Notes under the pieces: generated by a model
What the model saw: only the letters and a program-made list of their open reading frames with translations
Databases searched by the model: none
Told to the model about the DNA's origin: nothing
Origin: Mobula birostris
Taxonomy: Eukaryota
Length of the DNA stretch: 64,000 nucleotides
Assembly (NCBI RefSeq): GCF_030028105.1
Contig: NC_092374.1
Span: 7,277,334 to 7,341,333, forward strand
Direction: 5' to 3'
Shown here: positions 3,846 through 52,970 of the stretch, piece after piece
How positions within the stretch are numbered: position 1 is the first letter of the stretch
How the letters are laid out: each line of letters starts with the position of its first letter
Made by a program: the position numbers and the translations under genes

Positions 3846-3877
3846 CTATTTCTTCACCGCCGCTGCGTAGATCACCT
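3846..3877 (-). CDS. Terminal coding exon, [10 protein letters not shown]
   Basis: Acceptor gatttttgtgtttcag, phase-1 entry, ITIM-like VIY motif, ends TAG immediately followed by TAA. Confidence 0.72.
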
Positions 3878-6800
3878 CTGAAACACAAAAATCAGACATT
3901 AGTGCAGACAGCGAGGGGAGCTTACCCCGACACCAGACCCAGGAGCATCCAGGGAGACAGGACGATGACACCATCAGGACGAGGGTCACTGTGACAAAGT
4001 CCAAGCCCAGGTGAATTTATTATCAAAGAATGTTTCTGTCACCACGCACTTCCTTAACTCATATCCCAGATTCTCACTTTCCTGCGTGCATTTACAGAGA
4101 AAAAATAAATACTATGGAATTTATTAACAATTCAACATAGAGACAATCAAACATCCGATATCCAGAGGAAGACAAAGGGTGCAAATAAAAAATAAATGAT
4201 ATTGAGAACATGAGTTCAGAGTGTTTGAAAGTGAGGTGGTTCCAGTGAGAACGTGGGGAACAGCGATGACACCCCCATGATATCTCACATATTCCTCCAA
4301 GTGAACAGACCAGGAGTGTTTGGTGTTTCCTAGAGTGGAGAGTCTCGGACCAGAGTGCCAGGGATGTCTCTTTAGATCAGAGATGAGGAGGAGTTTCTTT
4401 AGCCGGAGGATGGTGAATCTGTGGAACTCATTGCCACAGACGGCTGTGGAGACCATGACATCAAGTATGTTTAACGCAGAGATTGGTAAGTCCGTGATTG
4501 CTAAGGTGGTTAAGGGTTACGGGAGAAGGCAGGAGAATAGGGTTCAGGAAAGTAAAAAGTAAATCAGACATGACTGGCAGGTGGAGCAGACTTGATGGGC
4601 TGAATGGCCTAATTCTGCTTCTACGTGTACGGGGTCTTTCTTTTTGTTAAATTTAAAATGGTTTCTCTTGTTATGTTATACTGAGGAATGCTAGAAAGTC
4701 TCTAACTAGACAACTGCTTGGGTTATTAGAGATAGCAGGGTGCTATTAACCAATGGGTGGTCATGTGTCATTTTGTTTTCGGATACAGTGCTGTCTCATA
4801 TGACTGGGGACGGGGTTTTGGTGGGGAGTTGGAGGAGAGACGGGGAGGACGGTGGACGTGGGGGGGGTTTTGCCAGGGAGTCGGAGCAGAGACGGGGAGT
4901 CGGTCGAGGGACGGGGAGTCGGAGCAGAGACGAGGAGTCGGAGATGAGACGGGGAGGACGGTGGAGAGACGGGGAGTCGGAGGAGAGACGGGGAGTCTGA
5001 GGAGAGACGGGGAGGACGGTGGAGAGACGGGGAGTCGGAGGAGAGACGGGGAGGACGGTGGAGAGACGGGGAGTCGGAGGAGAGACGGGGAGGACGGTGG
5101 AGAGACGGGGAGTCGGAGGAGAGACGGGGAGGATGGTGGACGGGCTTTTGGCGGGGAGTCGGATGAGAGACGGGGAGTCGGCGGAGAGACGGGGAGTCGG
5201 AGGAGAGACGGGGAGGACGGTGGACATGCGGGGGTTTTTGCCGGGGAGCCGGAGCAGAGACGGGGAGTTGGTGGGGGGAAGGGGAGTCGGAGCAGAGACG
5301 AGGAGGACGGTGGAGAGACGGAGAGTCTGAGGAGAGACGGGGAGGATGGTGGAGAGATGGGGAGGACGGAGGAGAGACCGGGAGGACGGAGGAGAGACCG
5401 GGAGTCGGAGGAGAGACGGGGAGGACGGTGGAGAGACGGGGAGTCGGAGGGGAGACGGGGAGTTGGAGGGGAGATGGGGAGTCGGGGTGGAGACTGGGAA
5501 GTCGGAGGAGAGACGGGGAGTCAGAGGAGAGACGGGGAGGACGGTGGAGAGACGGGGAGGACGGTGGAGAGACAGGGAGTCGGAGGAGAGACGGGGAGTC
5601 GGAGGAGAGACGGGGAGGATGGTGGAGAGACGGGGAGTCGGAGGAGAGACGGGGAGTCGGAGGAGAGACGGGGAGGACGGTGGAGAGACAGGGAGTCGGA
5701 GGAGAGACGGGGAGTCGGAGGAGAGACTGGGAGGATGGCGGACGTGCGGAGAGACTCCGGTCGATCACTCTGGGTGATCCTGAGCCGTGAGTCGACAGGA
5801 TCTGGGTGGTCGTCAGGAATTGATTGAGCTCCAACGGTAGCGCGCGAAGAACTTGGAGTTTGGTAAGTCTTGGCGTCTTTTTTTTTCATTACTTTCCTCT
5901 CTGTATCAAATTTATATTAATGTCATAGAATTAGTAGTACCTATAAAGTTTATTTGTTAAAATTTACTGGGTGTGCTGGCTGATGATTGATGTTTGTGAT
6001 TGATTCGGGCGGCGACCGACACTGTGGGGAGTGTTGAGGCAGGTGCTGGGCGGGATTTCCCCTAGACATATACGAGCCAATATAACGGAACGTTACATAC
6101 ATCTTACAGAAAATCATGAGCAATGTAGGCATGGGAGATAGGCAGTCTTTCTCTCTGAAAGTGTCAAATACTCAAGGAGAAAGATTGACGATGAGTGAGA
6201 GAGGACAGCTGTACCAGTGATGGAACAGGCTGAATTGTCCCTTCAAACTATGGACTCACTTTCAGGAATTCTTCATCTCATGTCTTTGATATTGCTTATG
6301 TATTATTATTATTTTATTGTTTTCCTTTTGTATTTGCATTATATTGCTTTTGGTCTTTGGTTGTTTGTCCATCCCGCCTGGTGAGGTCTTTCAAAGATTC
6401 TATTGTGTTTCTTTGTATTTACTGTGAATGCCCTGAAGAAAATGAATCTCAGGGTTGTATGTGGTCACAGATGTACTTTGATAATGAATTTACTCTGAAC
6501 TTAAGTTCCAACACTCTCTGTAGCCTCTTGCATTCCTGTGCACAGGAAAATGTCCGACTGTTGGCCCAAGCGTTTCTGTGACCACCACCCTCTGTCCCCC
6601 AGGTTGGTGACTCGCTGGATCGTAGACATGAGGACCAGTGACCCACCCCTCACCTCTCCAGTAAACATCTGGTTTGGAGGTTGCTGCGATTCCAGAGTAA
6701 GAAGCCTGGGGCTCAGGGTGTCTCAAGGCAGAGGATGATAGATTTTTGATTGGTCAGGGTGTGAAGGGATACAGAGGAGTGGGGGTGGTGGAAGGCAGGA

Positions 6801-9800
6801 GATTGAGGCTGAGAGTAAAAATTGGACCAGCCATGCAGAAGTGGGGGAGAAGACTCGAAGTGGCAAAGTGGCCTAATTTTGCTCCCATATCGTGTAGTCT
6901 CTGTGAGTACTGGAGCTGATATGGAAGACTAAAGACTGAAGGTTGAAGGAAGGCTGAAGATTGAAGGTTGAAGACTGAAGATTGAAGACTGAAGATTGAA
7001 GACTAAAGATTGAAGACTAAAGATTGAAGACTGAAGATTGAAGACTGAAGATTGAAGACTGAAGGTTGAAGCCTGAAGATTGAAGACTGAGGGTTGAAGA
7101 CAGAGGGTTGAAGACTGAAGGTTGAAGACTGAAGGTTGAAGGTTGAAGACTGAAGATTGAAGATTGAAGACTGGAGTTTGAAGACTGAAGTTGGCCAGCC
7201 CAGATGTTGAGGCCCAGGGTTCGCATGTCTAGAATCCAAGACCTGATGTCTGTGAGTCCACTGGCAGCTGAAGGCTGGGAGGTGGCCTGTCCCGGGTTGG
7301 AAGCCTGACGGTGTGGGGGGGGGGGGCGGGTGGGGTGGTGAGAGGGAGGAAAGGGGTTGTTTGCTGGGCTTGTTTTTTCTCATGGTTGTTGTTCTGTTGT
7401 TGTTTGTGTTGTTCTACTGAACATTGTGGGCGTGCGATGTTGGTGCCGGAATGTGTGGTGACACTTGTGGGCTGCCCCCGGCACATCCTCGTGTTGTGTT
7501 GGCTGTTGACGCAAATGACGCATCTCACTGTATGTTTCGATGTATGTGTGATAGATACATGGATCTGAATCGGAGATTGTCCAGGCCTCTCTGATGAACA
7601 GGAAGCTCAAAGGGCCTGTGCAGTCAGCTCACCATTCCCTATTCCTGTCTCGTACGTCACCGTCTCCCAGCTAGTGTCCACACCTGTGCAACAAGAGCAT
7701 ACAAGGTATGCTTGCCTCCCTTTCTTCCCCCTCCCCTTTTGACCCTCTCCCCTACCTCCTCCTCATTCCTCCTCCCTCCATTTTCCCCATCCCCCTCCGT
7801 TCCCCACTCTGTCCCTCCCTTAACTATCCTCTTCCCACCTATCCCTCTCCCTCTCTCCTTCTCTTCACCCCACTCTCACCCTCTCTCTCCCTCCCTCACC
7901 CCCTTCCTCTCTCTCTCTCTCTTCCCCCTTTCTCTGTCCCTCTCCCACTCCCCTTCTGCCTTTCACTCACCCCTTCTCTCTCTCCTTCTCCCCTCCTCCT
8001 CATTCTCTTTTATCCCCTTTCCCCTCCCTCATCCTCTCTCCTCTTTCCCCCTCTCCCTCTCTTTCATTCTCTCCCTCCTCTTCCACCATCTCCCCCTCCT
8101 CTCCCACTCTTCACTGCTTCTCCAGTCCTTCCCTCCAGTCACAGTGAGGTGGACCGCAGGACCCAGCAGCAGCCAGACACACACTCTGTCAGGGGAAGGG
8201 ACGGGAGAATGGAGCATTTGAAGGAGATCATTTTCAAGAATACCTTGAAGGAAAGCCTTACCTACAGGTCCAGCTTCCTGCTTCTGCCCACCTGGAATTG
8301 AAGAAGAATTTTCTGTTAGTCAGCAGGATGACCTCGAAGTGATCCAAGAAATGGAAAAGGGTAAATGGAGACTGTACCTCGATCTTTAGCTTGCGGTTTG
8401 CTTGCCTTCTCACCTCCAAACAAAATACTGGCATAAGTGCAGGAATCTGGCTGCTCTGTAAGGAGAGAGATTCGTTTGAATCCACAGCAAATCAAAGTCA
8501 GGAGATGGAATGTTATGTTGAAGCTGAATGAGACATTGGTGAGGCCCAATTTGGAGTATAGTGTGAAGATTTGGTCACCCAACTACAGAAAAGACATGAA
8601 TAAGATTGAAAGAGAAAATTTACAAGCATGTTGCCAGAACTTGGTGATCTGAGTTATGGGGAACGGTTCAATGGATTCGGGCTTTATTCCCAGGAGTGCA
8701 TTCTGGGCTGAAGGGCCTGTAATGTGCTGTAGATTTTCTTTGTTTTCATGAGACTAGAACTAGAGGTCAGAGGTTAAGTGTAAAGGTGAAATGTGAAAAG
8801 AAAACATAAGACCATAAAACACAGGAGCAGAATTAGGCCATTCAGCCCATCGAGTCTGCTCTGCCATTTCATCATGGCTGATTAATTTTTCCTCTCAACC
8901 CCATTCTCCTGCCTTCTCCCCATAATCTTTGACATCCTGACTAATTAAGACCCTATCAACATCTGCTTTAAGTATACCCAATGACTTGGCTTCCACATCC
9001 GTCTGTGGCAATGAATTCCCCAGATTCACCACCCTCCTCATCTCTGTTCTATAGCGACATCCCTCGATTCTGAGTCTCTGCTCTTAGACACCCCCACTAT
9101 AGAAAACATGCTCTCCAATTTTGCTCTGTCTAGTTTTTCAATATTCGATGGTCAGCAGGCAGTCTGAGAAATGGTAAACGGTAAATGGAGACTGTACCTC
9201 CATCTTCAGCTTGAGGTTTGCTTGCCTTCCCACCTTCTGTTGAAATACTGGCATAAGTGCAGGAATCTGGCTGCTCTGTAAGGAGGAGAGCGATTAATCC
9301 GAATCGACTGTAAACGTCTGAAAGCAAGAAATGTTACAACACCTAGCGGCTCACGTTTATACACATTTACACACCTGCCTTTGTAAATGTCCTGAATAGT
9401 GGGAAGTTCACATCTACAGATGCGCTGGGCTGTCCGCACCACTCTCTGCAGAGTCCTGCGATTGAGGGAAGTACAGTTCCCACACCAGGCAGTGATGCAG
9501 CCAGTCAGGATGCTCACAATTGTGCCCCTGTAGGAAGTTCTTAGGATTTGGGGGTCCATACCAAACTTCTGGATACAATAGGGTATTTTAAGAGACTCTT
9601 AGATAGGTACAAGGATCATAGAAAAACTGAGGGCTATGGGTAACCCGAGGTAATTTCTAAAGTACATGTACAGCACAGCATTGTGGGCTGAAGGGTCTGT
9701 ATTGTGCTGTGGGTTTTCTATGTTTCTAAGTTTCTTCAACTGTCTGAGGTGAAAGAGGAGCTGTTGTGCCTTTTCACCACACAGCCGGTCTCTACAGACC

Positions 9801-12800
9801 ATGTGAGATCCTCAGTGATGTTTATGCCGAGGAACTTAATCAACCCCAGATCCATTGATGTCAATAGGGGTCAGCCTGTCTCCATTCCTCCTGTAATCCA
9901 CAACCAGCTCCTTTGTTTTTGCGACGTTGAGAGAGAGGTTGTTTTCTTGACACCACTGTGTCAGGGTGATGACTTCCTCTCAGTAGGCTGCCACGTTATT
10001 ATTTGAGATAATCAGTATAGTGTCGTCAGCAAATTTAATTACAGATTGGAGCTGTGGGTGGTGACACAGACATGGTTATACAGAGAGTAAGGGAGGGGAC
10101 TTAGTACACACCCCTGAGGGGCGCCTGTGTCCTCCAGCATTTTGTGTGTTTTGCTCTGGATTTCCAGCATCTGCAGAATCTCCTGTGTCAACCAAAACTC
10201 CCCACCCTCCTTCCATATTGTGGCCAAACGTTCCCCCCACCCCGGCCCTTCCACCACCCACTAATGTAGAACCATCTCAGCAGGCAGCGATCGCTCCCGA
10301 TCTCCTGAAGGACAGACTGTGCCCCACACCATGGTGACCTCGTGCTGGGTTCAGTGGGAAACACACTGCCCATGTCAGAGGATCATTCCACTCTGGAGTG
10401 GAACAGAGAGGCTCAGCTGAAACGGTTCAGAACTCGACAGGATGGCACCTCAGCACAATCGCTTTTGGTCCACCAAGTCCGAACACAAGTTAGATAAACA
10501 CAAAATGAAAGGGAATGACTTCACTCACCCCATCACCGAACCGTTCCCACAAACTACCGACTCTCTTTCAAGGACTCTTCATCTTGTGTTCTCAATACTT
10601 ACTGCTTATTTATTCACTATGATTATTTCTTTCTTTTTGTATTTGTACAGCCTGTTGTCTTTACACCCTGGTTGTCCACCTTGTTGGTGTGGTCTTTCAT
10701 TGATTCTATTATTGTCATTCGATTTATTGAGTATGCCCGCAGGAAAATGGATCTTAAGGTTGTATATGGTGACAAATATGTACTTTGATAATAAAATTAT
10801 TTTGAACTTTGAAATGTAAACAGGTCTCAGAAGTTCAAAGGAATGGGATTGTTGATATTTCGCATTGAGACCCTGTAAAACATCGATAATTTATTTCTCC
10901 CCCACAGATGCAGTTCAACCCGCTGAATTTCTCTACCAGATTGAGTATCACTCAGTTCCCAACACTCCTGGTGCTACAAATGAGGTCAAAACTCTCATCC
11001 AATAAGGTGCTGGCGTTTACCTTTGTTGTTGCTGCTCGGGACGATGTTGTCGTACAACGGGCTGCTGTCGTGCACTGTAACACAGATCAGAGAATGAAGC
11101 TCAAGTTTAATTGTCAGTCAACCATACACATGTATACAGCCTAACGAAACAGCGTTCCTCAGGGCCAAGGTGTAAAATACAGTCATCAACAGTCACACAC
11201 TGCACATAGCAAACACACGGCATGTATACTGCTGTTACAATAGCAAAGAAAACCATACAGTCACAAAATAATATCAGCACACGTCCCTCAGTGTCATAGC
11301 CTGAAGATTGGTGTTGCAAGGGATGTTGTCCTGGAGCCATGTTTCTCTAAAGAATAAGCATGTAGCAGTTCCTCATCTCACACTAGTGCACCAGTGCAGC
11401 TGCAGACCAATGCAATCCCACTTGTCTTCATCGAGTGAATACTAGAGGGCAGCACTGATAGCATACAGCAGGAGATTCAGCCTATCAAATCCATACTAGC
11501 TCTCAGGAGGGCAATCCTATCAGCCCATTGATCTTTCTCTTATCCCATGGTCCTGGACGTTATCTCCTGCCAATCCAATACTTCTCCGAATGCCTTTGCT
11601 ACTACAGATTTAGGGTTGAAACAATCCTAACCCTTCCCCTTGTAACTGCTGGCCAGCATTTTCACACCATGCATCTTGGTTCAGAAGGGAACAGGTTCTC
11701 CCTGTGGATTTATGGGTGAGAAACTGAAGTACACACAGTAGACCATACTCTCTGCTCTGCCAGTCTACCATGGCTGATTTATTCTCCCTCTCAACCCCAT
11801 TCCCCTGCCTTCTCCCTGTAATCTCTGCACCTTCACCAATGCTCGCACACGCTTCCTTAGATACAGGCTCCAAAACTGCTGACAATACTCCAAGTGTGGC
11901 TCGGCCAATGCCTTGTGCCTTGCAGAGGTGGAAATGCCATGGGGTATCAGGAGGTGGGCTGCTCCCTCCCAGAGACCCAGCCTCTGGCTTGCTTGCTGCT
12001 TACATAACTAGTCCAGATGAGTGCCTGGTCAGTGGTAACCTCCTCCCAAGACCCAGAGTGGCAACACGACTGACATATGTCCTGTAGACCTCTGTGGGGA
12101 GCCGTAGAGCGCTGGGCTTCTCAGTTTCTTGTGCACCTGTACTTGCTGATTGTTGCCTTAATGAGAGTCCTTCATTGAATTGACTTTATTACATGAGGAG
12201 TAAAAATCTTTACGTTACGTCTGCATCAAAACGTGCAATGTGCAATTTATAGTAATTTATAATAAATAGTATGTACAACAGGACAGTCAATATAACATAG
12301 AAATACAGTTGTATCAGTGTGAATTAATCCATCTGATGGTCTGGTGGAAGAAGCTGTTCCGGAGCCTGTTGGTTCTGGCTTTTATACTGCAGTACTGTTT
12401 CCTGGATGGTATCAGCCGGAACAGTTTGTGATTGGGGTGACTCGGGTCCCCAAGGATCCCTTGGGCCATTTTTACACACTTGTCTTTGTAAATGTCCTGA
12501 ATAGTGGGAAGTTCACATCTGCAGATGCACTGGGCTGCCCGCACCACTCTCTGCAGAGTCCTGTGACTGAGGGAAGTACAGTTCCCATACCAGGCAGTGA
12601 TGCAGCCAGTCAGGATGCTCTCAATTGTGCCCCTGTAGAAAGTTCTTAGAATGTGGGGGGCCATAACAAACTTCTTCAACTGTCTGAGGTGAAAGATGAT
12701 CTGCTGTGCCTTTTCACCACACAGCTGATATGTACAGACCACAAGAGATCCTCGGTGACGTTTATGCCAAAGAACTTAAAGCTGTTCACCTTCTCAACCC

Positions 12801-15800
12801 CAGATACATTGATGTCAATAGGGGTCAGCCTGTCTCCATTCCGCTTGCAATCCACAACCAGCATCTTTTGTTTTTGCCACATTGAAGGAGAGGTTGTTTT
12901 CTTGACACCACTGTGTCAGGGCGATGACTTACTCTCTGTAGGCTGCCTTGTTATTATTTGAGATAATCAGTGTAGTGCCGTCAGAAATTTAATTACAGAT
13001 TGGAGCTGTGGGTGGCGACACAGACATGGTTATACAGAGAGTAAGGGAGGGGATTTAGCACACACCCCTGAGGGGCATCTGTGTCCTCCAGCATTTTGTG
13101 TGTGTTGCTCTGGATTTCCAGCATCTGCAGAATCTCCTGTGTCGACCAAAAACTCTCCACCCTCCTTCCATATTGTGGCCAAACGTTATCCCCACCCCGG
13201 CCCTTCCACCACCCACTAATGTAGAACCATCTCAGCAGGCAGCGATCGCTCCTGATCTCCTGAAGGACAGACTGTGCCCCACACCATGGTGACCTCGTGC
13301 TGGGTTCAGTGGGAAACACACTGCCCATGTCAGAGGATCATTCCACTCTGGAGTGGAACAGAGAGGCTCAGCTGAAACGGTTCAGAACTCGACAGGATGG
13401 CACCTCAGCACAATCGCTTTTGGTCCACCAAGTCCGAACACAAGTTAGATAAACACAAAATGAAAGGGAATGACTTCACTCACCCCATCACCGAACCGTT
13501 CTCACAAACTACCGACTCACTTTCAAGGACTCTTCATCTTGTGTTCTCAATACTTACTGCTTATTTATTCACTATGATTATTTCTTTCTTTTTGTATTTG
13601 TACAGCCTGTTGTCTTTACACCCTGGTTGTCCACCTTGTTGGTGTGGTCTTTCATTGATTCTACTATTGTCATTCGATTTATTGAGTATGCCCACAGGAA
13701 AATGGATCTTAAGGTTGTATATGGTGACAGATATGTACTTTGATGATAAAATTATTTTGAACTTTGAAATGTAAGCAGGAACTCAGCAGCTCAAAGGAAT
13801 GGGATTGTTGACATTTCGGATTGAGACCCTGTAAAACATCGATAATTTATTTCTCCCGCACAGACGCAGTTCGACCCGCTGAATTTCTCTACCAGATTGA
13901 GTGTCACTCAGTTCCCAACACTCCTGTTGCTACAAACGAGGTCAAAACTCTCATCCAATAAGGTGCTGGCGTTTACCTTTGTTGTTGCTGCTCGGGACGA
14001 TGTTGTCGTACAACGGGCTGCTGTCGTGCACTGCAACACAGATCAGAGAATGAAGCTCAAGTTTAATTGTCAGTCAACCATACACATGTATACAGCCTAA
14101 CGAAACAGCGTTCCTCAGGGCCAAGGTGTAAAATACAGTCATCAACAGTCACACACTGCACATAGCAAACACACGGCACGTATACTGCTGTTACAATAGC
14201 AAAGAAAACCATACAGTCACAAAATAATATCAGCACACGTCCCTCAGTGTCATAGCCTGAAGATTGGTGTTGCATGGGATGTTGTCCTGGAGCCATGTTT
14301 CCGTAAAGAATAAGCATGTAGCAGTTCCTCATCTCACGCTAGTGCATTAGTGTAGCTGCAGACCAATGCAATCGCACTTGTCTTCATCGAGTGAACACTG
14401 GAGGGCAGCACTGATAGCATACAGCAGGAGATTCAGCCTATCAAATCCATACTAGCTCTCAGGAGGACAATCCTATCAGCCCATTGATCTTTCTCTTATC
14501 CCATGGTCCTGGACGTTATCTCCTGCCAATCCAATACTTCTCCGAATGCCTTTGCTACTACAGATTTAGGGTTGAAACAATCCTAACCCTTCCCCTTGTA
14601 ACTGCTGGCCAGCATTTTCACACCATGCATCTTGGTTCAGAAGGGAACAGGTTCTCCCTGTGGATTTATGGGTGAGAAACTGAAGTACACACAGTAGACC
14701 ATACTCTCTGCTCTGCCAGTCCACCATGGCTGATTTATTCTCCCTCTCAACCCCATTCCCCTGCCTTCTCCCTGTAATCTCTGCACCTTCACCAATGCTC
14801 GCACACGCTTCCTTAGATACAGGCTCCAAAACTGCTGACAATACTCCAAATGTGGCTCGGCCAATGCCTTGTGCCTTGCAGAGGTGGAAATGCCATGGGG
14901 TATCAGGAGGTGGGCTGCTCCCTCCCAGAGACCCAGCCTCTGGCTTGCTTGCTGCTTACATAACTAGTCCAGATGAGTGCCTGGTCAGTGGTAACCTCCT
15001 CCCAAGACCCAGAGTGGCAACACGACTGACATATGTCCTGCAGACCCCTGTGGGGAGCCGTAGAGCGCTGAGCTTCTCGGTTTCTTGTGCACCTGTACTT
15101 GCTGATTGTTGCCTTCACGAGAGTCCTTCATTGAATTGACTTTATTACATGAGGAGTAAAAATCTTTATGTTATGTCTCCATCGAAACGTGCAATGTGCA
15201 ATTTATAGTAATTTATAATAAATAGTACGTACAACAGGACAGTCAATATAACATAGAAATACAGTTGTGTCAGCGTGAGTTCATCAGTCTGATGGCCTGG
15301 TGGAAGAAGCTGTCCCGGAGCCTGTTGGTCCTGGCTTCTATGCTGCGGTACCGTTTCCCGGATGGTATCAGCTGGAACAGTTTGTGGTTGGGGTGACTCG
15401 GGTCCCCAATGATCCTTCGGGCCCTTTTTACGCACCGGTCTCTGTAAATGTCCTGAATCATGGGAAGTTCACATCTACAGATGTACTGGGCTGTCCACAC
15501 CACTCTCTGCAGAGTCCTGCGATTGAGGGAAGTACAGTTCCCATACCAGGCAGTGATGCAGCCAGTCAGGATGCTCTCAGTTGTGCCCCTGTAGAAAGTT
15601 CTTAGGATTTGGGGTGCCATACCAAACTTCCTCAACCATCTGAGGCGCTATTGTGCCTTTTTCACCACACAGCCGGTATGTACAGACCACATGAGAGCCT
15701 TGGTGATGTTTATGCAGAGGAACTTAAAGGAGTTTGAGATTAGGCAAATCAATGTAGTGTCGTCAGTGATTTTAATTAGCAGATTGGAGCAGTGGGTAGC

Positions 15801-42800: not shown

Positions 42801-45800
42801 TATCTCTTTTTGTGCAACTTATTTAATTTAAATTTATACATGTAATTTATAATTATCTAATATTTAATTTTAAATTACACATGGACGTTCCCAGGGCAGA
42901 AATGGCTAATACAAGGGGGCATAATTTTAAGGTGATTGGAGGAAAGTATGGGGGGGTGTGAGAGGTAAGTTTTTCTACATAAAGAGTGGTGGGTGCTGGG
43001 GTTGATGGTAGTGGCAGATTCATTAGGGACGTTTAAGCGACTCTTACATAGTCAGATGGATGATAGAAAATGGAGGGTTTTGAAGGGAGCGAAGGGTTAG
43101 ACTGATCTTGGAGTAATTTACAGATGGGCTGAATGGCCTGTACTGTGTTGTATGTTCCATGCTTAACACATAGAGGAGAAAAAAATTAAATGAAGTATGT
43201 AGCGTGAGGGGGAAGAAGGAAGTCTTCCCCACTGGGAGCTGCTAATGAAAGAGTTCTGCACCTTTCGTTGTTCCTTTTACGTGCTGGGAAGTTGGAGATT
43301 CTGCCCTAAATCAGACTCACTGACTCTGAGAACATCCAGTTGTACGACGAGTGAAAAAGCAGCCAGCCAAAGGAGCTCAGTGGGTCAGCCAGCATCCGTA
43401 GAGGAAAAACAACTCTCAGCATTGCAGGTCAAGAGATTCGACAAGTCTTCAGCAAGCACGAGAGGTGAACTGGTCGTCGATTCATTCCCGTCACAAGTAG
43501 CTGGGGAAGTGAAAAACTTTGTTGTCCGAGCAGATCATTTCATCACATCAGTACACTGAGGCAGTAGAGGGGAAAACACCAGCAGAGTGCAGAATAAAGT
43601 GTGACAGTTACTGAGAAAGTGCAGTGCGGGCAGACAGTGAGGAGCAGGGCCATGGTGAAGTGGGGTGCCACTGTAGCACAGCCGTTAGTGTGACACTATT
43701 ACAGCTCGGGGTGTCGGAGTTCAGAGTTCAATTCCTGCACCGCCTTGTACGCTCTCCCTGTGACCGCGTGGGTTTCCTCCAGGCGCTCCAGTTTCCTCCA
43801 CGGTCTAAGGGTGGACCGGCTCGTAGGATGTACCAGCTGATGGGAGCGGGTCTTTGATTTTGCAGCCTGTTTCACAGAGGCAGGGAGAAGTGTAGACAGA
43901 ATCCACGGAGGGGAGGCTGGCTTCTGTCCTGATCAATGTCACAGGTTGAGCCCTGTCATCGTGTCCTGTCTGCCTCCTCCCCCTGACATTCCGCAGAATC
44001 ACAATTCTGAGATTGATGTGATTATTGGACTGTAGTTTATTTTGCTCTCCTTCAGTTTCTGTTTTCTTTCTTGTTGCCGATTGGTGGGCTGGGGTTCTAG
44101 GGGGGCGATATATTGTTTTTTGTGTGAGTGAGAGAGTTGGGAGGGTGTTTGAGGTTTGTGAGTTTCTTTCTTTTTAATTTTCGTGTAGGAGGGGGGTTTA
44201 CATCTTTTCTTTTAATGAATCCCATGGTTTTTCTGTACATCATGGCTATCTGGAGAAGATGAATATGAGAGTTGTATTCTGCATGAATACTTTGACAATA
44301 AAATGAACCTTTCAACCTTTTTCCACAGATGCTGCCCGACCTGCTGAGTTCCTCCAGCATTTTGTGTGTGTTGCTCTGTATCTCCAGCATCTGCAGATTT
44401 TCTCCTGTTTATGACCATGGTTGTTCTTGGCAAATTTCTCTACAGAAGTGGTTTGCCATTGCCTTCTTCTGAGCAGTGTCTTTACAAGATGGGTGATCCC
44501 AGCCATTATCAGTACACTTCAGAGATTGTCTGCCTGGTGTCACATAACCAGGACTGGTGATATGCACCGGCTGCTCATATGACCATCCACCACCTGCTCT
44601 CAGGGCTTCACGTGACCCTGATCGGGGGCTAAGCAGGGGCTACACCTCGCCCAAGGGTAAAGTGAAGGCTAGCAGAGGGAAGGAGTGTCTTACACCTCCT
44701 TTGGTAAAGACGTATTTTCACCCTGCCACCCTACAATACATTGCAATACGTATTAATAAAAATCTGTAAACTGCAATAAGAAATATCTATCAAATAATTT
44801 TAAATTAGGTAAGTTGCACAGAAAGAGAGAACAAAAAGTTAGAAAAAAGGAGACAAAGTTAATGGACCTCACTTTCTGATTGTCCATTCAGAAACCTGAC
44901 GGCAGAAAGGAAGAAGCTCTTCCTGAAATGTTGAGTGTGTGTCTTCTCTGGGAAGCTTCCTGATCCTCCGTTAGAACTCCACTCATTCCTCCCAGGCTCA
45001 GGCAAGGCCCCGCCGGGGGGCCCGTTGAAGGTCTGGGGGCCACCCTGTGTGAAGGACTGCCTGAGATGGAGATGTGGTGGGGAAACGGAACTCATTACCA
45101 GCCGAGACTGGGAGTGGCCAACATAACACTCAGCCCCAGAGTCTGGACACATAATACAATGGGTTCTTTTCCGGATCTGATCTACAGTCAGATCTCACTC
45201 GGGGACAGATGATAAACCCAGGGTGGGGGTTGATTAGAGAAAGGATAATGGTAGCAGGCTTCCTATCTTCCCCTCCCCCCCCACTCCCAAAACTCTCCCC
45301 ATACCCTGCAGAATGTGTCAATGGTTTCTTACCTGGTCTGACCTGCAGCTGGATCTCACTCTGGAACACATGGATAAATGGGGGTTTGACGTGGTCTCTG
45401 TAGGATGAATAATTATGGCTCTTTTTCCTGAACGCAGCCAGACACAAGTAGCTGTGACTGTCGTTCACACTCAGCTGCTTTATCCTGATCGAGGCGTTTC
45501 CCCACTCTGGGTCCCCGACGAGCTCGTACCGAGTCACTCCGTTTTCCGCTGCCCACGATCCATTTTCATAACGCCTGAATGTGACGATGTGTCGGTAGGG
45601 ATCCTTCCTCATCCACGTCACCGTGTGTGCGGTGAGGTTCTGCGGAGGCCGTGTGAACTCACAGGGTAACGTGGCCGAAGCTCCCTCGGTTCCAGTCATC
45701 ACAGAGACACTCTCGCCGGGAGCTGAGGGAAGGACAGGTGCCAGAATAAATCAGTTAACCACCACCAAACATGTTTAAACACTGACAAAATTTCCAGCCT

Positions 45801-48800
45801 ACAAAATAACAAAAACTCCCCACAGCGCCCTCCCAAATGAAAACACCCCCACATGTGTCTGACTAATTGCAAACCATTCCAACAAGAGAAACTATTTCGA
45901 ACATAAAACAGTCCCATCGGGCAGGAGGTAGAGAAGCCTAAATCTCACACCACCACGTTCAGGAACAGCTAATTCCCTTCAGCCATTCAGTTGTTGAACC
46001 AATTGACACCAACACTAATCAGGAGAGTGTAGCAACACTCATCAGTACAGTGTAACACCAATCAGGATAGTGTAACAACACTAATCACTACAGTGTAACA
46101 ACACTAATCAGTAGAGTGTTACAACACGAATCAGTACATTCTAACAACACTAGTCACAACGATGTAACAACACTAGTCTGTGCAGTGTATGAAGGTTGTA
46201 AGTTATTAAGTCAATTCAATTCAATATAATTCAGTGAAATAATACTAGTCACTAAAGGCAACAAAACAAATCACTACTGTGTAACAACACTAACAACAGG
46301 AATTCTGCAGATACTGGAAATTCAAGCGACACACATCAAAGTTGCTGGTGAACGCAGCAGGCCAGGCAGCATCTCTAGGAAGAGGTACAGTCGACGTTTC
46401 AGGCTGAGACCTTTCGTCAGTCGAAGACGAAGGGTCTCGGCCTGAAACGTCGACTGTACCTCTTCCTAGAGATGCTGCCTGGCCTGCTGCGTTCACCAGC
46501 ATCTTTGAAGTGTAACAACACTAATCAGCAGAGCGGAAGTCCTGTCCTGAGCCTTGTGGCTCATCAGGCCGGTGCTTATGCCGGTTTCTGTGCCATGAAG
46601 CGACTGAGAGTATGAGACTCCCCCCCCCACCCCCACGGATAGGACGGCAGTCTATCGCGAGGTTAACCCCAGCATTTTTGCCCGTACCCATTTTTCGGCT
46701 GGGTAGACTGGAGCATTGTGTGGTTAAGTGCCTTGCTCAAGGACACACGCTGAATCAGTAGAGTATCACGGCAATAATCGGAATACTGTAACAACACTAA
46801 TCACTGCAGTTTAAAAACACTGGTCAGTACTGTGTGACAACACTAGTCAGTACACTGTTACACCAAAAATCACAACAGTGTAACAAAATGAATCCCAACA
46901 GTGTAACTACACTAATGGTGACAGTGTAATAACACTAAGCAGTACAGTGTAACAAGAATAATCAGTACAGAATTAAAACACTAGTCAGATCAGTGCAACA
47001 ACTAGTCCGGACAGGTAACAACATTAAGTAGTACTGTGTAACAGCACTAATCACTAGAATGTAACAACACAAGATACAGTGTAACAACACTAGTTAGTAC
47101 AGTGTAACAACACTAATCACTACAGGTAACAACATTAATCAGTACAGGTAACAACATAAATCACTACAGAGAAACAACACTAATCACTATCGTGTGACAA
47201 CACTAGTCAGTACAGTGTAACAACACTAATCACTACAGTGTAACAACACTAGTCACTACAGGTAACAACATTAATCAGTACAGGTAATAACATAAATTGC
47301 TACAGAGTAACAACACTAATCAGTGCAGTGTAACAGCATTAATCACAAGAATGCAACAACACTATTCAATACAGTGTAACAACACTAGTCAGTAAAGAGT
47401 AACAACACTATTCAGTACAGTATAAAACACTAGTCAGTTCAGTACAACTAAGAATTACCATGTAACATCACATATCAATACAGTGTAACAACACTGAACC
47501 ATACATTGTAACACTAGTCACTGCAGTGTATCAATGCTAGTCAGTACACTGTAACAACGCAAATCATTACAGTGTAACAATATAAATAACTGCAGTGTAA
47601 CAACACTAATCAGAACAGTGTCACAACACTAGTCTCTACAGGTAACAATACTAGTCAGCACAGTGTAATAACATAAATCAGTACAGTATAATAGCACGAA
47701 TCAGGACATTGTAACAACACCAGTTAGTACAGTGTAACAACACAAATCACTACAGTGTAACAAGACAAATAGCTACAGTCTAAAAATGCTCGTCACTACA
47801 GTGGAACAACACTAATCAGTACAGTGTAACAACACAAGAGTAAAGTACAACACTAATCACTACTCATGTAAAACATGAGTCTTTGCAGAGTAACACTAGA
47901 AACGAGTGTAACAACACTAATCAATACAGTGTAACAACACTAGTCATTATGTGTAGCAACACTTTTCCGCACAGCGTAATAACACTAGTCAGTACAGTGT
48001 AATGACACCAGTTACGACAGTGTAACAAACTAATCAGTACAGTGTAACAACACTACACAGTAGACTGTAACAACACTAATCAATACAGTGTAACAACACT
48101 AATCAGTACAGTGTAACAACACTATTCAGTACAGTGTAACAACATTAATTAGTACAGTGTAACACTAGAGGCAACAGTGTAACAGCGCTAATCACTGGAG
48201 TGTAACAAACCTATCAGTAGAGTGTAACAACCCTGATCACTACAGGATAACGATACTACTCAGTACAGTGTGATAACACAGTTCACTGCATTGTAACGAT
48301 CCCAAACACCACATGGTCACTGTTCAAAGCTCTTTTTCACCACCGTGACCCATTGCTGCCTTTTATCCTTGGGCGGTGGACCTGATTGAAGTCCCCTCCT
48401 CTCAAAACTTCTGATATGAGGAGAGTTTGAGGGCTCTGGGCCTGTACTCACTGAAATTCAGAAGAATGATGGGGATCTTATTGAAACCTATTGAATGCTG
48501 AAAGACCTTGATAGAATGAATGTGAAGAGTATTCCTATGGTGGGGAGTCTTAACCCAGAGAACACAGCCTCAGAATACAGGGTGCATTGTCGTTAGCAAA
48601 TTTAATTAGCAGATTGGAGCTGTGGCTGTCGACACAGTCATGGGTATACAGAGAGTAAAGGAGGGGGCTTAGTACACAGCCCTGAGGGGCACCTGTGTTG
48701 AGGGTCAAAGGGACAGAGGTGAGGGAGCCCACTCTTACCACCAGCCAGCGATCTGACAGGAAGCAGCATAAAATCCAGGACCAATGGGCTCCGGGACAGC

Positions 48801-51800
48801 TTCTTCCACCAGGCCATCAGAATGCTTAATTCATGTTGACACTACTGTGTTTCTATGTTATACTGACTATCCTGTTGTACATTATACATTATAAATTACT
48901 ATAATTGCACATTGTACATTTGAAGAGATGTAACGTAAAGATTTTACTCCTCATACATTTAAAAGATGTGAGAAATCAGGTCAGTTCAATTTTAGAATGG
49001 AGATGAGGAGGAATTTCTTCAGCCAGAGAGTGACCAATCTGTAGAATTCGTTGCCACGTGTGGCTGTGGAGGCCAGTTCAGTGGGTATATTGAAGGCGGA
49101 GGTTGATAGATTCTTCACTGGTCAGGGCGTGAAGTGATACGGGGAGGAGGAGGGAGACTGGGGCTGAGAGGGAAATGGATCAGCCATGTTGAAATAGCAG
49201 AGAAGACTCGATGGGCTGAATGGCCTAATTCTGCTCCCATGCCTCATGGTCTTATGGGCACTAGCCTACCCAACATCCAAGACATCTTCAAAAGGAGATG
49301 CTTCAACAAGGAGGCGTCCAACACTGAGGACCCCCATAACCCAGGATGTGCCCTCTTCTCATTGCTGCCATCAGGCTGGTGGTACAGGAGCCTGAAGTCA
49401 CACACTCGATGTTTCAGAAACAGCTTCTTCCCCTCCACTATCAGATTTCTGAATAGACATTCAACCCATGAACGCTACCTCATGACCTTTTTTCTCCTTT
49501 TGCACGAATTATTTAATTTAACTTTTTATATAATTGGGCATCGTAAATTGTTCATTGTAAATTGTTCATTGTAAATTGTTCACTGTTAATTGGTCATTGT
49601 GAATTGTGGTGGGTTCAATCGATGGGTTTCTGGGTGGTGGGGCTCATTGGGCCGGAAGGGTCTGTTCCGTGCGGTGTCTCTAGATTAATAAACAAGTAAA
49701 TAATGAGGTCAAGAGTGCATCGTATCGTACTTGGGGACCACTCAGTCGTTATAACTGCAGGATAAAAGCTGTCCTTCAGCCTGGTGCTCCGTGCATCCAG
49801 GCTGTTGTATCTTCTGCCCAATGGGAGAGGGCAGAAGAGAGGATGACCAGAGTGGATGGGAGTTGATTTTGCAGCCTGTTTCACAGAGGCAGGGAGAAGT
49901 GTAGACAGAATCCACGGAGGGGAGGCTGGCTTCTGTCCTGATCAATGTCACAGGTTGAGTCCTGTCATCGTGTCCTGTCTGCCTCCTCCCCCTGACATTC
50001 TGCAGAATCACAATCGGGATTCGGATAATCTCACTGGCTTGTGTTTTGTGCAGCAGTACATTGCAATCATCATCATCAGTGTGTGCTGTGTTGTGTGATG
50101 TGGGCAATCACAGTCTCTGAACCATGACTAACACACACAAAATACTGGAGGAACTCAGCAGGCCAGGCAGCATCTATGGAGAAGAGTAAACAGCTGGCGT
50201 TTCAGGCTGACCCCTCCATCAGGACTCATTTTCATTTTAAAATCTTTTTTTATTAATTATTATTGAAGATCAACAAAAAATACATTAATCAAGTCAACAT
50301 GTCAATGTGTACAATGAGAAATTAAATGATCAAATAACTGATTAACAAAGCTAAACAATAATAATAAGAAAAAAAAATGTTAAAACTAATTTTTTGGAAA
50401 AAAGAAAGGAGGGAAAAAGAACCCCTACTAACTAAAACAAAATGAAATCCCTACTAACAAAAAAACCTCCAAAAAAACCCATTGGGAGCACAACCACGGA
50501 GCTATACACCATACAAGCTTCCATAAAAGATAACACATCAATCCACCAACTCAACGCCATTTACACAAGAATCAGAAGGGAACCATCTTAATTAACGCAA
50601 ATCAAATGATAGTAGCGGGCAAAAGAACCCCACCTTTTCTCAAAGTCAAATCAAGGATCAAAAGTTCGACTTCTGATTTTTTCCAAACTAAGACATAACA
50701 TCACCTGAGAGAACCATTGTATCAAAGTGGGAGCAGAGACATCTTTCCACTTCAATAAAATAGCCCTTCTGGCCAATAATGTGACAAATGTAATTACATG
50801 TTGGTCTGATATAGAAATACCAGGAATAAATTGAGGGATTATACTGAACAAAAGTGTCAATTTATGAGGTAGTTTATTTTGCTCTCCTTCAGCTTCTGTT
50901 TTCTTTCTTGTTGCTGATTGGCGGGTTGGGGTTCCAGAGGATGATGTATTGTTTTTTATGTGAGGGAAGGAGTTGGGAGGGTGCTTGAGGTTTGCCAGCT
51001 TTTTACTTTTTTACTTTTACTTTTCATGTGGGACGGGTGTTGACGTCTTCTTTCATAATGAATCCCATAGGTTTTCCGTAGATCATGGCTATCTGGAGAA
51101 GATAAATATCAGAGTTGCATTCTGCGTGCATACTTTGACAATAAAATGAACCTTTCAACCTTTTTCCATAGATGCTGCCCGACCTGCTGAGTTCCTTCAG
51201 CATTTTGTGTGTGTTGCCCTAGATGTCCAGCATCTGCAGATTTTCTCCTGTTTATGACCATGGTTGTTCTTGGCAAATTTTTCTACAGAAGTGGTTTGCC
51301 ATTGCCTTCTTCTGGGCAGTGTCCATACAAGATGGGTGACACCAGCCATTATCAGTACTCTTCAGGACTGGTGATATGCACCGGCTGCTCATACGACCAT
51401 CCACCACCTGCTCTCAGGGCTTCACGTGACCCTGATCGGGGGCTAAGCAGGGGCGACACCTCGCCAAAGGGTAAAGTGAAGGCTAGCGGAGGGAAGGAGA
51501 GTCTTACACCTCCTTTGGTAAAGACGTATCTTTACCCTGCCACCCTGTTATACATTGCAACACATATTTATAAAAAAACCGTAAATTACAATAAGAAATA
51601 TATATCCACATGTATAATTTTAAATTAAATAAGTAGCACAAAAAGAGAGAAAAAAAGGAGAAAAAGTGAGCTGGTCCTCACTTTTCTGACTGTCCATTCA
51701 GATATCTGATGGCAGAAAGGAAGAAGCTCTTCCTGAAATGTTGGGTGTGTGTCTTCTCTGGGAAGCTTCCTGAGCCTCCGTTAGAACTCCACTCATTCCT

Positions 51801-52970
51801 CCCAGGCTCAGGCAAGGCCCCGACAGGGGGCCCATTGAAGGTCGGGGGGCCACCCTGTGTGAAGGACTGTCTGAGATGGAGATGTGGTGGGGAAACGGAA
51901 CTCATCACCAGCCGAGGCTGGGAGTGGCCGACATAACACTCAGCCCCGGAGTCTGGACACATAATACAATGGGTGCTGGAGATCCCGACCCATCCCTGAA
52001 CACTGCAGAAGATGCCGAGATGGTGTGGGAGAGAGCAACGGCCTCTGTGGACCTGCTGGAGTCCATAGTGGGTGGGGGACAGGCCCCTCCCATTGGTGCT
52101 GCCTTCCTCTGTTGCTCAGTGCTGCCTTCCTCTATTGCTCAGTGCTGCCCTCCAGTGTTCACTTAGTGAGAGACAAGCTGGACCAGGACAACATCCAATC
52201 TACCATCAAGCTACAAGCCAGAACACTCAGGAACTTGGGCTATATTATGTATTTTTGTGACTGTATGTTTTTCTGCTATCGTAACGATGTGTACCGTGTG
52301 CTGTTGCTACTCTGCTTTACACTTTGTCCCTGGAGAAACTCTGTTTTGTTGTGCTGTATGCATGTGTGGCTGATTGACAATTAAACTTGAATTTGAATGT
52401 GGCGACAGGTTCTTTTCCGGGTCTGATCTACAGTCAGATCTCACTCGGGGACAGACGATAAACCCGGGGTGGGGGTTGATTAGAGAAAGGATAATGGTAG
52501 CAGGCTTCACTTCTCCCCCCCAGCCCCCCAACTCCCAAAACCCTCCCCATACCCTGCAGAATGTGTCAATGGTTTCTTACCTGGTCTGACCTGCAGCTGG
52601 ATCTCACTCTGGAACACATGGATAAATGGGGGTTTGACGTGATCTCTGTCGAATGAATCATCATGGTTCATTTTCCTGAACTCAGCCAGACACAGGTAGC
52701 TGTGACTGTCCTCCACACTCAGCTGCTTTATCCTGATCGAGACGTTTCCCTGCTCTGGGTCCCCGACGAGCTCGTACCGAGTCACTCCGTTTTCCGCTGC
52801 CCACGATCCATTTTCATAACGCCTGAATGTGACGATGTGTCGGTAGGGATCCTTCCTCATCCACGTCACCGTGTGTGCGGTGAGGCTCTGCGGAGGCCGT
52901 GTGAACACACAGGGTAACGTGGCCGAAGCTCCCTCGGTTCCAGTCATCACAGAGGCACTCTCGCCGGGAG
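3846..52970 (-). CDS. Spliced IgSF V-set transmembrane receptor with tyrosine-motif cytoplasmic tail (SIGLEC15/PILR-like V domain; 5'-partial, leader not in window)
   Basis: Eleven exons, all with AG acceptors and (except the terminal exon) GT donors. Phases chain into one open frame if all are included: [178 protein letters not shown]. Assembled manually; no transcript evidence. Confidence 0.82.
4626..6097 (+). mobile_element. Solo LTR-like element containing an expanded G-rich minisatellite
   Basis: TGTAC...TTACA termini; TSD TACG (4622-4625)/TACA (6098-6101). Removal restores the CR1 tail ttctacgtcttac. Orientation tentative. Confidence 0.6.
4805..5760. repeat. G-rich minisatellite of interleaved ~19-21 bp units (ggagagacggggagtcgga / ggagagacggggaggacggt)
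   Basis: Direct inspection; explains the spurious long ORFs at 4757-5889. Confidence 0.95.
6920..7190. repeat. (tgaagac/tgaagat)n short tandem repeat
   Basis: Direct inspection. Confidence 0.95.
7633..7683 (-). CDS. Cytoplasmic exon 5 (51 nt, phase 1-1), VTYETG motif
   Basis: Acceptor tgctcttgttgcacag, donor AATG|gtgagc. Encodes [17 protein letters not shown]. Confidence 0.75.
7705..8130. repeat. CT-rich polypyrimidine low-complexity tract
   Basis: About 420 nt almost entirely C/T on the plus strand. Confidence 0.9.
8378..8455 (-). CDS. Cytoplasmic exon 4, copy a (78 nt, phase 1-1), [12 protein letters not shown]-like motif
   Basis: Acceptor tctctctccttacag, donor CGAG|gtacag. Encodes [26 protein letters not shown]. 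An in-frame alternative donor GGAG|gtgaga would end the exon at 8414. Confidence 0.75.
9198..9275 (-). CDS. Cytoplasmic exon 4, copy b (78 nt, phase 1-1), CTYASI ITIM-like motif
   Basis: Acceptor ctctcctccttacag, donor GGAG|gtacag. Encodes [26 protein letters not shown]. The donor position is inferred; homology to copy a decays shortly after it. Confidence 0.7.
9330..10130 (-). mobile_element. Rex1/Babar-like LINE fragment (left flank of the exon-3 duplication), with small CR1 insert ~9570-9730
   Basis: [26 protein letters not shown] and [11 protein letters not shown] remnants. Confidence 0.75.
11021..11074 (-). CDS. Cytoplasmic exon 3, copy a (54 nt, phase 1-1), PLYDNI motif
   Basis: Acceptor tctgtgttacag, donor AAAG|gtaaac. 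Exon sequence identical to 13977-14030. Confidence 0.78.
12170..13080 (-). mobile_element. Rex1/Babar-like LINE fragment (junction copy of the duplication)
   Basis: ORF 12314-12742 ([31 protein letters not shown]) and ttcaatgaa-type tail. Confidence 0.8.
13977..14030 (-). CDS. Cytoplasmic exon 3, copy b (54 nt, phase 1-1), PLYDNI motif
   Basis: Acceptor tctgtgttgcag, donor AAAG|gtaaac. Encodes [18 protein letters not shown]. Confidence 0.78.
15125..16330 (-). mobile_element. Rex1/Babar-like LINE fragment (right flank of the duplication)
   Basis: ORFs 15270-15635 and 16129-16329 ([24 protein letters not shown]). Confidence 0.8.
16481..16630. repeat. 55-bp minisatellite, ~2.7 copies
   Basis: gacg(a/g)agtct recurs at 16511, 16566 and 16621; all three minus-strand frames contain stops. 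Confidence 0.85.
17396..19095 (-). mobile_element. CR1 LINE ORF2 RT + 3' end, degenerate
   Basis: [54 protein letters not shown]; (catagaaa) tail at the left. Confidence 0.92.
19096..21310 (+). mobile_element. CR1 LINE ORF2 (linker + RT + 3' end), 5'-truncated
   Basis: ORF 19101-20321 ([26 protein letters not shown]), then FADD and [10 protein letters not shown] segments with stops and frameshifts. Confidence 0.93.
21311..22320. mobile_element. Two abutting CR1 fragments (minus ~21311-21695; plus ~21696-22320)
   Basis: [15 protein letters not shown] linker on minus; KKAYGVL..LDHTW and 3' tail on plus. Confidence 0.8.
22445..22497 (-). CDS. Cytoplasmic exon 2 (53 nt, phase 2-1)
   Basis: Acceptor ttggttcttttctcgacag, donor TCAG|gtactg. 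Encodes [17 protein letters not shown]; sits in an island of non-repeat sequence. Confidence 0.78.
23040..24760 (-). mobile_element. Rex1/L2-like LINE 3' fragment hosting the solo LTR
   Basis: (aatcag)n tail; [50 protein letters not shown]. Confidence 0.8.
23209..24098 (+). mobile_element. Solo LTR (890 bp)
   Basis: TGTTAC...GTAACA inverted termini; exact 4-bp TSD GTGC (23205-23208, 24099-24102); AATAAA near 24032; interrupts a LINE 3' tail. Confidence 0.85.
25322..25790 (-). mobile_element. CR1 3' fragment of a young subfamily, nearly identical to 39225-39760
   Basis: [38 protein letters not shown]; catagaaa tail. Confidence 0.9.
27955..28110. repeat. ~30-bp minisatellite (cacccctggcactccttctctgcccc)
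   Basis: About five copies by inspection. Confidence 0.9.
30140..31265 (+). mobile_element. Rex1/Babar-like RT fragment interrupted by a Penelope-end insert (30488-30689)
   Basis: [53 protein letters not shown]. Confidence 0.85.
32809..32848 (-). CDS. Cytoplasmic exon 1 (40 nt, phase 1-2)
   Basis: Acceptor tctttttatttctttag, donor AAAG|gtaagg. Encodes [13 protein letters not shown](R) and supplies exactly the phase shift the 53-nt exon needs. Confidence 0.8.
32950..33480. repeat. Degenerate C-rich tandem repeat filling the intron between the TM exon and cytoplasmic exon 1
   Basis: Recurrent ccactgaatcccctcccacatcccacagacactccccc units. Confidence 0.85.
33516..33605 (-). CDS. Stalk + transmembrane exon (90 nt, phase 1-1)
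   Basis: Acceptor ctctctgtctcacag, donor AAAG|gtgagc. Encodes [30 protein letters not shown]: about 21 hydrophobic residues, then a KKK stop-transfer, with no charged TM residue. Confidence 0.9.
34135..37020 (-). mobile_element. CR1 LINE near-complete ORF2 (APE endonuclease + RT), degenerate
   Basis: [32 protein letters not shown]; [24 protein letters not shown]; (ataaccat) tail. Confidence 0.93.
37350..41830 (-). mobile_element. CR1 LINE with 5'UTR/ORF1 remnant and deleted ORF2, carrying nested fragments (CR1 39225-39760, Rex-like ~40745-40990)
   Basis: [14 protein letters not shown] endonuclease start; [10 protein letters not shown]; ORF1-type WVTVRKGKG and zinc-finger remnant near 41500-41620. 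Confidence 0.82.
45333..45722 (-). CDS. Ig V-set domain exon, proximal copy (390 nt, phase 1-1)
   Basis: Same acceptor and donor as the distal copy, open frame, canonical Cys/Trp/Cys. 17 nt differences from the 52581-52970 copy by manual alignment. Confidence 0.93.
46010..48298. repeat. ~23-bp degenerate satellite (agtacagtgtaacaacactaatc), ~2.3 kb, with inserts; short homologous stub at 53255-53335
   Basis: Direct inspection; each unit contains the inverted repeat agtgt..acact. Confidence 0.93.
46338..46506. repeat. ~80-bp near-perfect inverted repeat derived from Penelope-like termini
   Basis: 46338-46418 is the reverse complement of 46425-46506 with few mismatches; loop of about 6 nt. 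Confidence 0.9.
52581..52970 (-). CDS. Ig V-set domain exon, distal copy (390 nt, phase 1-1)
   Basis: Acceptor cctgtccttccctcag, donor CCAG|gtaaga. Encodes [66 protein letters not shown], with B-strand Cys, C-strand Trp and the DxxxYxC motif. Confidence 0.93.

Follow-up and report, generated by a model that had tools for sequence, protein, structure and literature searches.

The stretch of DNA analysed here, called the window below, covers 64 kb of the Mobula birostris genome over its whole length (contig NC_092374.1, positions 7,277,334 to 7,341,333). It holds most of one gene for a putative immune-type receptor with a tyrosine-rich tail, all exons of which lie on the minus strand. Using tblastn with M. 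birostris proteins of the same family, and reading the borders directly, we located 11 exons. An earlier note on this DNA had proposed that three kinds of exon (V, YDNI and YASI) were each duplicated singly, and that the copies might be spliced in various combinations to give many isoforms from one gene.

In the direction of transcription, the first two exons encode copies of the second V-set immunoglobulin domain of the receptor, called V2 hereafter. V2-b (52970-52581), the upstream copy, and V2-a (45722-45333), the downstream one, are each 390 nt long and match the Pfam V-set family with the same E value (7e-14); V2-b is 87-95% identical in tblastn to the V2 of M. birostris proteins. Then comes a transmembrane (TM) exon of 90 nt (33605-33516), recognised by a hydrophobic scan and by a 90% tblastn match to proteins P0009 and P0011; it encodes an uncharged TM segment followed by WKKK. 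Two short linker exons were found by tblastn and their splice sites: cyt1 (32848-32809, 40 nt, phase 1-2) and cyt2 (22497-22445, 53 nt, phase 2-1), the residues of the latter matching P0009 and P0011 at 100%. The rest of the tail is made of small cassettes. YDNI-b (14030-13977) and YDNI-a (11074-11021), 54 nt each, encode identical 18-aa peptides with a YxN tyrosine motif. YASI-1 (9275-9198, 78 nt) encodes a 26-aa cassette with TYASI, and is followed by YASI-2 (8455-8378, 78 nt), by a 30-nt exon encoding the 10-aa GGQK cassette (8291-8262), and by the terminal coding exon (3877-3846), with its TAG stop at 3848-3846.

An AG acceptor is present at all 11 exons and a GT donor at all internal ones, and the joined exons form an uninterrupted frame of 429 codons. 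All duplicated exons are of phase 1-1, and so are the TM and GGQK exons. This means that any subset of the cassettes keeps the frame. The non-duplicated cyt1 and cyt2 exons are asymmetric, and can be included only as a pair. Direct reading therefore bears out the phases, intact splice sites and open frame that had been described for the duplicated exons. The exon description as a whole stands for all 11 exons, with two amendments: the window lacks the 5' end of the gene, and cyt1 and cyt2 are not symmetric.

Only one TM exon was found in the window. A tblastn search with family proteins detected no activating-type TM exon (that is, one with a lysine), and no exon for the first V-set domain (V1) or for the leader was found anywhere in the window. 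A split of the locus into two genes was considered and rejected on this basis. The 11 exons read open from end to end and converge on a single TM exon and a single terminal exon, in agreement with the one-gene description given first. V1 precedes V2 by 4-10 kb in three M. birostris paralogues; here, none is present within 11 kb. We conclude from the sequence that the window most probably contains the 3' four-fifths of one type I membrane receptor gene, presumably its exons 3-13. No annotated protein for this gene turned up in protein searches.

Self-comparison of the window confirmed that the V, YDNI and YASI exons are each present twice, in units of about the sizes initially given. The V2-b unit (53344-50869) and the V2-a unit (46097-44032) are offset by 7,248 nt and can be aligned over ~2.1-2.5 kb, at 87-93% identity. 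The YDNI units are two tandem segments of 2.95 kb (9732-15729), with one YDNI exon each, and are 94.6% identical over 3,068 nt (15729-12672 versus 12781-9732). The YASI exons are offset by 820 nt, and their alignable stretch is just 124 nt long (89.5% identity). The three pairs differ in size and in age (see below), as expected if they come from three independent events.

Tandem units that are 94.6% identical, as those of YDNI, call to mind an assembly artefact, either haplotypes set one after the other or pieces joined wrongly, since haplotig errors can mimic such a pattern. Three observations speak against it. Both V2 units and both YDNI units recur, in an unchanged order, in an independent assembly from Mobula hypostoma: the locus of LOC134347359 in this species (L002) aligns colinearly along ~64 kb of the window, at ~95% identity, and the window gene is the orthologue of LOC134347359 (85% identity to its protein model, with gaps counted). 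Furthermore, the copies group with their orthologues rather than with their neighbours. In trees, YDNI-a and YDNI-b each pair with their M. hypostoma counterpart (support 0.995 and 0.998), and each V2 copy likewise groups with its orthologue (support 0.997 for the a-type clade). Finally, a divergence of 4-13% between copies seems, in our judgement, too high for alleles. An artefact is therefore very unlikely, and the false join that the earlier note had named as a possible refutation is not borne out. Because the copies group by orthology, the V2 and YDNI duplications predate the split between M. birostris and M. hypostoma. The doubled exons are most probably inherited structural changes and not assembly errors.

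The comparison of orthologous loci in other species, suggested at the outset, also informs on the age of the duplications. Whereas M. hypostoma has two V2 and two YDNI units, the three M. birostris paralogues (L001, L003 and L004) have a single V2 and a single YDNI unit each. Both YASI cassettes are found in the skates Leucoraja and Amblyraja, where the duplicated unit holds a second GGQK exon too, and most ray and skate gene models contain both copies. In the window, nothing alignable to a relic of a second GGQK exon was detected after YASI-1. These comparisons indicate that the YASI pair is ancient, and not a fresh pair of cassettes, whereas those of V2 and YDNI are young.

The surroundings of the young pairs suggest how they arose. 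Three copies of a long interspersed nuclear element (LINE) 3' fragment, at 9206-9760, 12190-12790 and 15146-15740, bracket the YDNI units, and an open reading frame (ORF) in this fragment matches Pfam ALKBH8_N. About 220 nt are common to all three copies, which is the layout expected of unequal exchange between repeats; the 2.95-kb unit would have been doubled by such an exchange between the flanking LINE fragments. For V2, the downstream introns fall into two types, ~430 nt of insertion or deletion apart (support 0.997). The a type is that of V2-a, where the ~430 nt are deleted, of its M. hypostoma orthologue and of L004, to which the V2-a unit is 97.7% identical. The b type is shared by V2-b, its M. 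hypostoma orthologue, L001 and L003. As the two units bear the flank signatures of two paralogue lineages, the V2 pair most likely results from an unequal crossover between two adjacent paralogues. It would have created a fusion in which a b-type gene contributes the 5' part and an a-type gene the remainder, with the junction just upstream of the a-type V2. The intron directly upstream of V2-a contains a minisatellite of ~66 copies of a 23-nt repeat (46010-48300, detected by Tandem Repeats Finder and by reading the sequence). A short remnant of it lies upstream of V2-b, and paralogues from M. birostris also contain it in the intron between V1 and V2 (14248-15150 in L003). This minisatellite may be the site of the crossover.

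We then asked what kind of receptor the gene encodes. Its V exon matches dozens of RefSeq proteins, from rays, skates, one sawfish and one catshark. The family architecture was drawn from 70-odd RefSeq proteins of Mobula, Hemitrygon, Hypanus, Pristis, Leucoraja, Amblyraja, Rhinoraja, Narcine and Scyliorhinus. It consists of a signal peptide, V1 and V2, followed either by a TM segment with a lysine and a very short tail, or by an uncharged TM segment and a tail of tyrosine cassettes. Among solved structures, human Siglec-15 (7zoz) is the best match of the family V1 (E=9e-15), far ahead of all others. The V1 of paralogue P0192 has an arginine after the strand-F cysteine, as well as an extra C'-C'' cysteine pair, and both features align with those of Siglec-15 (PMC10264397). 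On the strength of these alignments, the gene appears to belong to a Siglec-15-related family present across rays and skates.

The V1 of Siglec-15 type and the leader being outside the window, the duplicated V corresponds, by its sequence, to the second, membrane-proximal domain and not to the N-terminal V1. The two V2 exons reach 52 bits in Pfam, where the cutoff is 26. They have a leucine after the cysteine and no extra cysteine pair, while Cys20, Trp36 and Cys93 are invariant or nearly so across the V2 alignment of the family. An AlphaFold2 model built with this alignment shows a nine-strand V-set fold, C' and C'' included, with a mean local confidence (pLDDT) of 86, and in a fold search its highest template modelling score was with Siglec-15 (0.73 with 7ZOZ). 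Domain 2 is thus a V-set domain according to Pfam, the model and the fold search, and it is not a C2-set domain of the Siglec-15 kind. Its hypervariable, length-variable region across the family is the FG loop. Since V2 is the second domain, a change in ligand specificity, which had been predicted from the use of one V copy or the other, is not an obvious consequence of a choice between V2 exons.

Siglec-15 itself combines a V-set domain, a C2-set domain and a charged TM segment (PMC10264397). The activating paralogues (P0003 and P0005, for example) carry LGLK in their TM segment, and its lysine resembles the charged TM residue by which Siglec-15 associates with DAP12/DAP10. By resemblance to the DAP12-associating residue, these paralogues would couple to an adapter. 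The TM exon of the window, in contrast with that of Siglec-15, encodes no charged residue, and the window gene is presumably, by analogy, the tyrosine-tailed, inhibitory-type counterpart of the clustered paralogues with a TM lysine and a short tail. Three more differences set the window gene or its family apart from Siglec-15: a long tyrosine tail; two copies of a domain 2 that lacks the arginine and, across the family, is of V-set type, its FG loop being hypervariable; and the existence of many clustered copies, Siglec-15 being a single gene in mammals.

When all cassettes are included, the tail has five tyrosines, in PLYDNI (twice), CTYASI (twice) and VIYAAA (once). The YxN motif, as in YDNI, is of a kind to which the SH2 domain of Grb2 binds, and YASI carries the YAS[IL] core of CD33-type ITIMs (immunoreceptor tyrosine-based inhibitory motifs). 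The terminal motif, VIYAAA in the window gene, reads VIYAAV or VTYAVV in the M. hypostoma orthologue and in the M. birostris paralogues: this position is that of the only strict ITIM of the family (V-x-Y-x-x-V), which is degenerate here.

The two V2 copies differ at 17 of 390 nt. Fifteen of these differences are non-synonymous, and 13 residues differ, 6 of them within the 16 residues of the FG loop (P=0.003). Positive selection between the copies is not significantly supported (dN/dS of 2.2, P=0.23). The exon pair diverges by 4.4%, compared to ~7.7% for the flanks (P=0.006), and includes an identical core of 133 nt, which suggests gene conversion between the copies. Between M. birostris and M. 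hypostoma orthologues, the dN/dS ratio (ω) is ~0.4 for V2-a and ~1.1 for V2-b, values that are weak as they derive from 11-15 substitutions. They hint that V2-a is the constrained copy, and that V2-b evolves neutrally, is drifting and may be dispensable.

Two exons of this gene are in fact damaged in M. hypostoma. A 791-bp deletion with a GGCCA microhomology (at 9937 in L002, equivalent to 53714-52925 in the window) took away the V2-b acceptor together with the initial 46 nt of that exon. In YASI-1 (54808-54885 in L002), a TCT serine codon replaces that of the tyrosine; the splice sites are intact, and the exon is skipped by the RefSeq model. This model starts at a methionine inside V2-b and ends by reading into a LINE. 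The loss of the V2-b acceptor and of the YASI-1 tyrosine means that exons of this gene are gained and lost singly.

These observations leave room for an alternative in which V2-b is a silent relic of a partly deleted upstream paralogue, rarely or never spliced, so that the working gene would be V1-V2a-TM-tail. It would account for the b-type flanks, which match L001 and L003 while those of V2-a match L004, for the ω close to 1 of the b orthologues, and for the crippled V2-b of M. hypostoma; moreover, the three paralogues work with one V2. However, in the window V2-b is complete and open, and it has the same acceptor (ccttccctcag) and donor (gtaagaaa) as V2-a, so that no cause for its skipping is obvious. 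In addition, the lower divergence of the exons compared to their flanks, and the identical core, point to a continuing exchange between the two copies. We consider this alternative a possible one, though rather doubtful.

We also examined the isoforms proposed for relatives, all of which are predictions from automatic RefSeq models. In Hemitrygon akajei, the sole difference between predicted isoforms X1 and X2 is the 18-aa YDNI exon. In Leucoraja, isoforms X1-X3 differ in the 10-aa GGQK and the 26-aa YASI exons. The clearest case of a combinatorial tail in the family is that of Narcine bancroftii, where 14 isoforms are predicted for one gene (P0047, P0205-P0217), with variable inclusion of 16-17-aa tyrosine cassettes drawn from a four-cassette block that is repeated twice. 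Some models omit V2 or the TM exon. A paralogue of H. akajei has two YDNI cassettes, from which we conclude that the modular tail is a family trait. Variable tails through cassette skipping are thus plausible, and some skipping of tail cassettes is likely.

In one M. birostris model, P0192, V2 is joined straight to cytoplasmic exon 1, leaving out a TM exon that looks intact (62334-62483 in L004). If true, this skipping would yield a soluble form. Separately, H. akajei models with two consecutive V2 domains were considered as support for the tandem use of V2, and set aside: the gene of P0201/P0043 has a model that spans 488 kb, with another family gene nested inside, and is probably chimeric.

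For V2, the situation differs from that of the tail. The two exons are separated by a 6.9-kb intron and use identical U2-type GT-AG sites, and the inclusion of both or of neither stays in frame. No RNA complementarity of the docking/selector type was found that links the flanks of the two V2 exons; the sole inverted pair nearby is repeat-derived and lies downstream of V2-a. Nothing that we detected enforces a choice between the V2 copies. The gene shares with Dscam and the clustered protocadherins the presence of tandem Ig-domain exon copies within one gene. Unlike Dscam, it has two copies only, and the large intron, the identical sites and the symmetric 390-nt exons are not those of a one-of-N mechanism. 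Unlike protocadherins, its copies have no promoter or start of their own: both V2 exons begin with a phase-1 acceptor, and no leader-like exon is present in the window.

This bears directly on the proposal that the locus is a regulated generator of combinatorial isoforms, with V2-a, V2-b or both, combined with 0-2 YDNI and 0-2 YASI cassettes, which would make both recognition and signalling dose variable. Several of our observations speak for it: all cassettes are of phase 1-1 with intact and near-identical splice sites, the YASI donors are weak (gtacag), the V2 differences concentrate in the hypervariable FG loop, and one tail cassette, V2 or the TM exon is missing from predicted isoforms of relatives. 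But besides the lack of any feature that forces the V2 choice, V2-b is neutral and crippled in the orthologue, and YASI-1 has lost its tyrosine there, which suggests drift; the way V2-b drifts and is lost speaks against a maintained system of alternative exons. Moreover, the two YASI copies are included together in most models. What stands of the combinatorial proposal is the frame-neutral cassettes and the tail skipping predicted in relatives; what is not supported is a regulated use of the two V2 copies. Taken as a whole, we regard such a generator as unlikely. Its most developed form is slightly less likely still: a regulated choice between V2-b and V2-a would show two different FG loops beneath a sialic-acid-binding V1, and 0-2 YDNI and 0-2 YASI cassettes would set a balance between adaptors and phosphatases. 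If true, a single gene would do the work that paired-receptor clusters usually spread over many genes.

The reading that we favour, and hold to be probable, is that of one Siglec-15-related, tyrosine-tailed receptor gene whose inherited exon duplications arose by ordinary exon turnover. It is based on exon structure, the open frame, homology, copy number (at three other loci and one orthologue) and patterns of divergence. By comparison with relatives, the protein would consist of a signal peptide, a V1 with the sialic-acid arginine, V2-b, V2-a, an uncharged TM segment and a tyrosine-rich tail. The default product probably retains most or all of the duplicated exons, which would lengthen its stalk and raise its number of phosphotyrosine docking sites. 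The V1 upstream, as well as ligand, signalling and splicing behaviour, are what we infer for this gene.

Some points weigh against this reading. The leader and V1 exons are absent from the window, and their presence upstream rests on the paralogues. The ω values, as said, are weak, and the cross-species models, being automatic predictions, are in some cases clearly imperfect, as in H. akajei and M. hypostoma. In addition, none of the five tail tyrosines fits the strict ITIM consensus, (S/I/V/L)xYxx(I/V/L): the residue at -2 is a cysteine or a proline, and the terminal motif has an alanine at +3, versus a valine in relatives. The motifs of the window gene are thus ITIM-like only, and, as no tyrosine conforms to the strict consensus, the word inhibitory is used here by analogy with the family.

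Elsewhere, tails built from small exons have been analysed in PECAM-1 (CD31). A series of very small exons, several with one tyrosine, encodes its tail, and their alternative splicing alters signalling or adhesion (PMC2132561). The tail of the window gene is likewise built of short tyrosine exons. The PECAM-1 exons, however, are not recent duplicates of each other, and their splicing was shown experimentally, whereas here the only instances are isoforms predicted for relatives. In-frame loss of an entire Ig V exon also has a precedent in a Siglec: skipping of CD33 exon 2 is reported to yield a receptor without the domain (PMC9954446, PMC6712934). In that case the skipped exon encodes the single ligand-binding V domain, whereas the candidate cassettes of the window gene are two copies of domain 2.

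The introns of the gene are rich in LINE fragments, including reverse-transcriptase and endonuclease ORFs, and the window sequence has no N. Three other repeats were noticed. The last intron contains a G-rich minisatellite (4876-5733, ~44 copies of 19 nt), with a strong GC skew and long spurious ORFs on both strands. Upstream of the V2-b exon, two inverted repeats of ~950 nt, 93% identical (58244-59191 and 59489-60443), contain Cys-rich ORFs. The latter match no Pfam family; they may resemble the GIY-YIG domain of Penelope-like elements. A pair of direct copies (53663-54239 and 57629-58201) is found near these inverted repeats.

Duplication of exons is in itself textbook behaviour for phase-1 modules of the Ig superfamily. 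Clusters of CD33-related Siglec, KIR and LILR genes comprise activating and inhibitory receptors, and have evolved through the duplication of genes and exons, through unequal crossover and through gene conversion between paralogues. The family described here differs from them in being found in rays, in having a V1 of Siglec-15 rather than CD33 type, and V-V rather than V-C2 ectodomains. The contrast drawn in the earlier note, with paired-receptor families diversifying by whole-gene duplication and this locus by exon cassettes, fails, as the family diversifies in both ways alike. We conclude that the locus illustrates ordinary exon-level birth and death in a modular receptor of a little-studied family. 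Together with its M. hypostoma orthologue, it offers a clean snapshot of this process at the level of single exons: of two exons, a V2 copy and a tyrosine cassette, one species has intact versions and the other has broken ones.

The interest lies more in the family than in the duplications. Searches of the literature on cartilaginous fish returned no relevant publication on this family, and only automatic annotation of it was found. Rays and skates have a large, clustered family of Siglec-15 type, with both TM-lysine and tyrosine-tailed forms, and with a V2 that carries a hypervariable FG loop. If the use of its cassettes proved to be regulated, this family would be well suited to study how the number of tail motifs tunes the signalling of a receptor.

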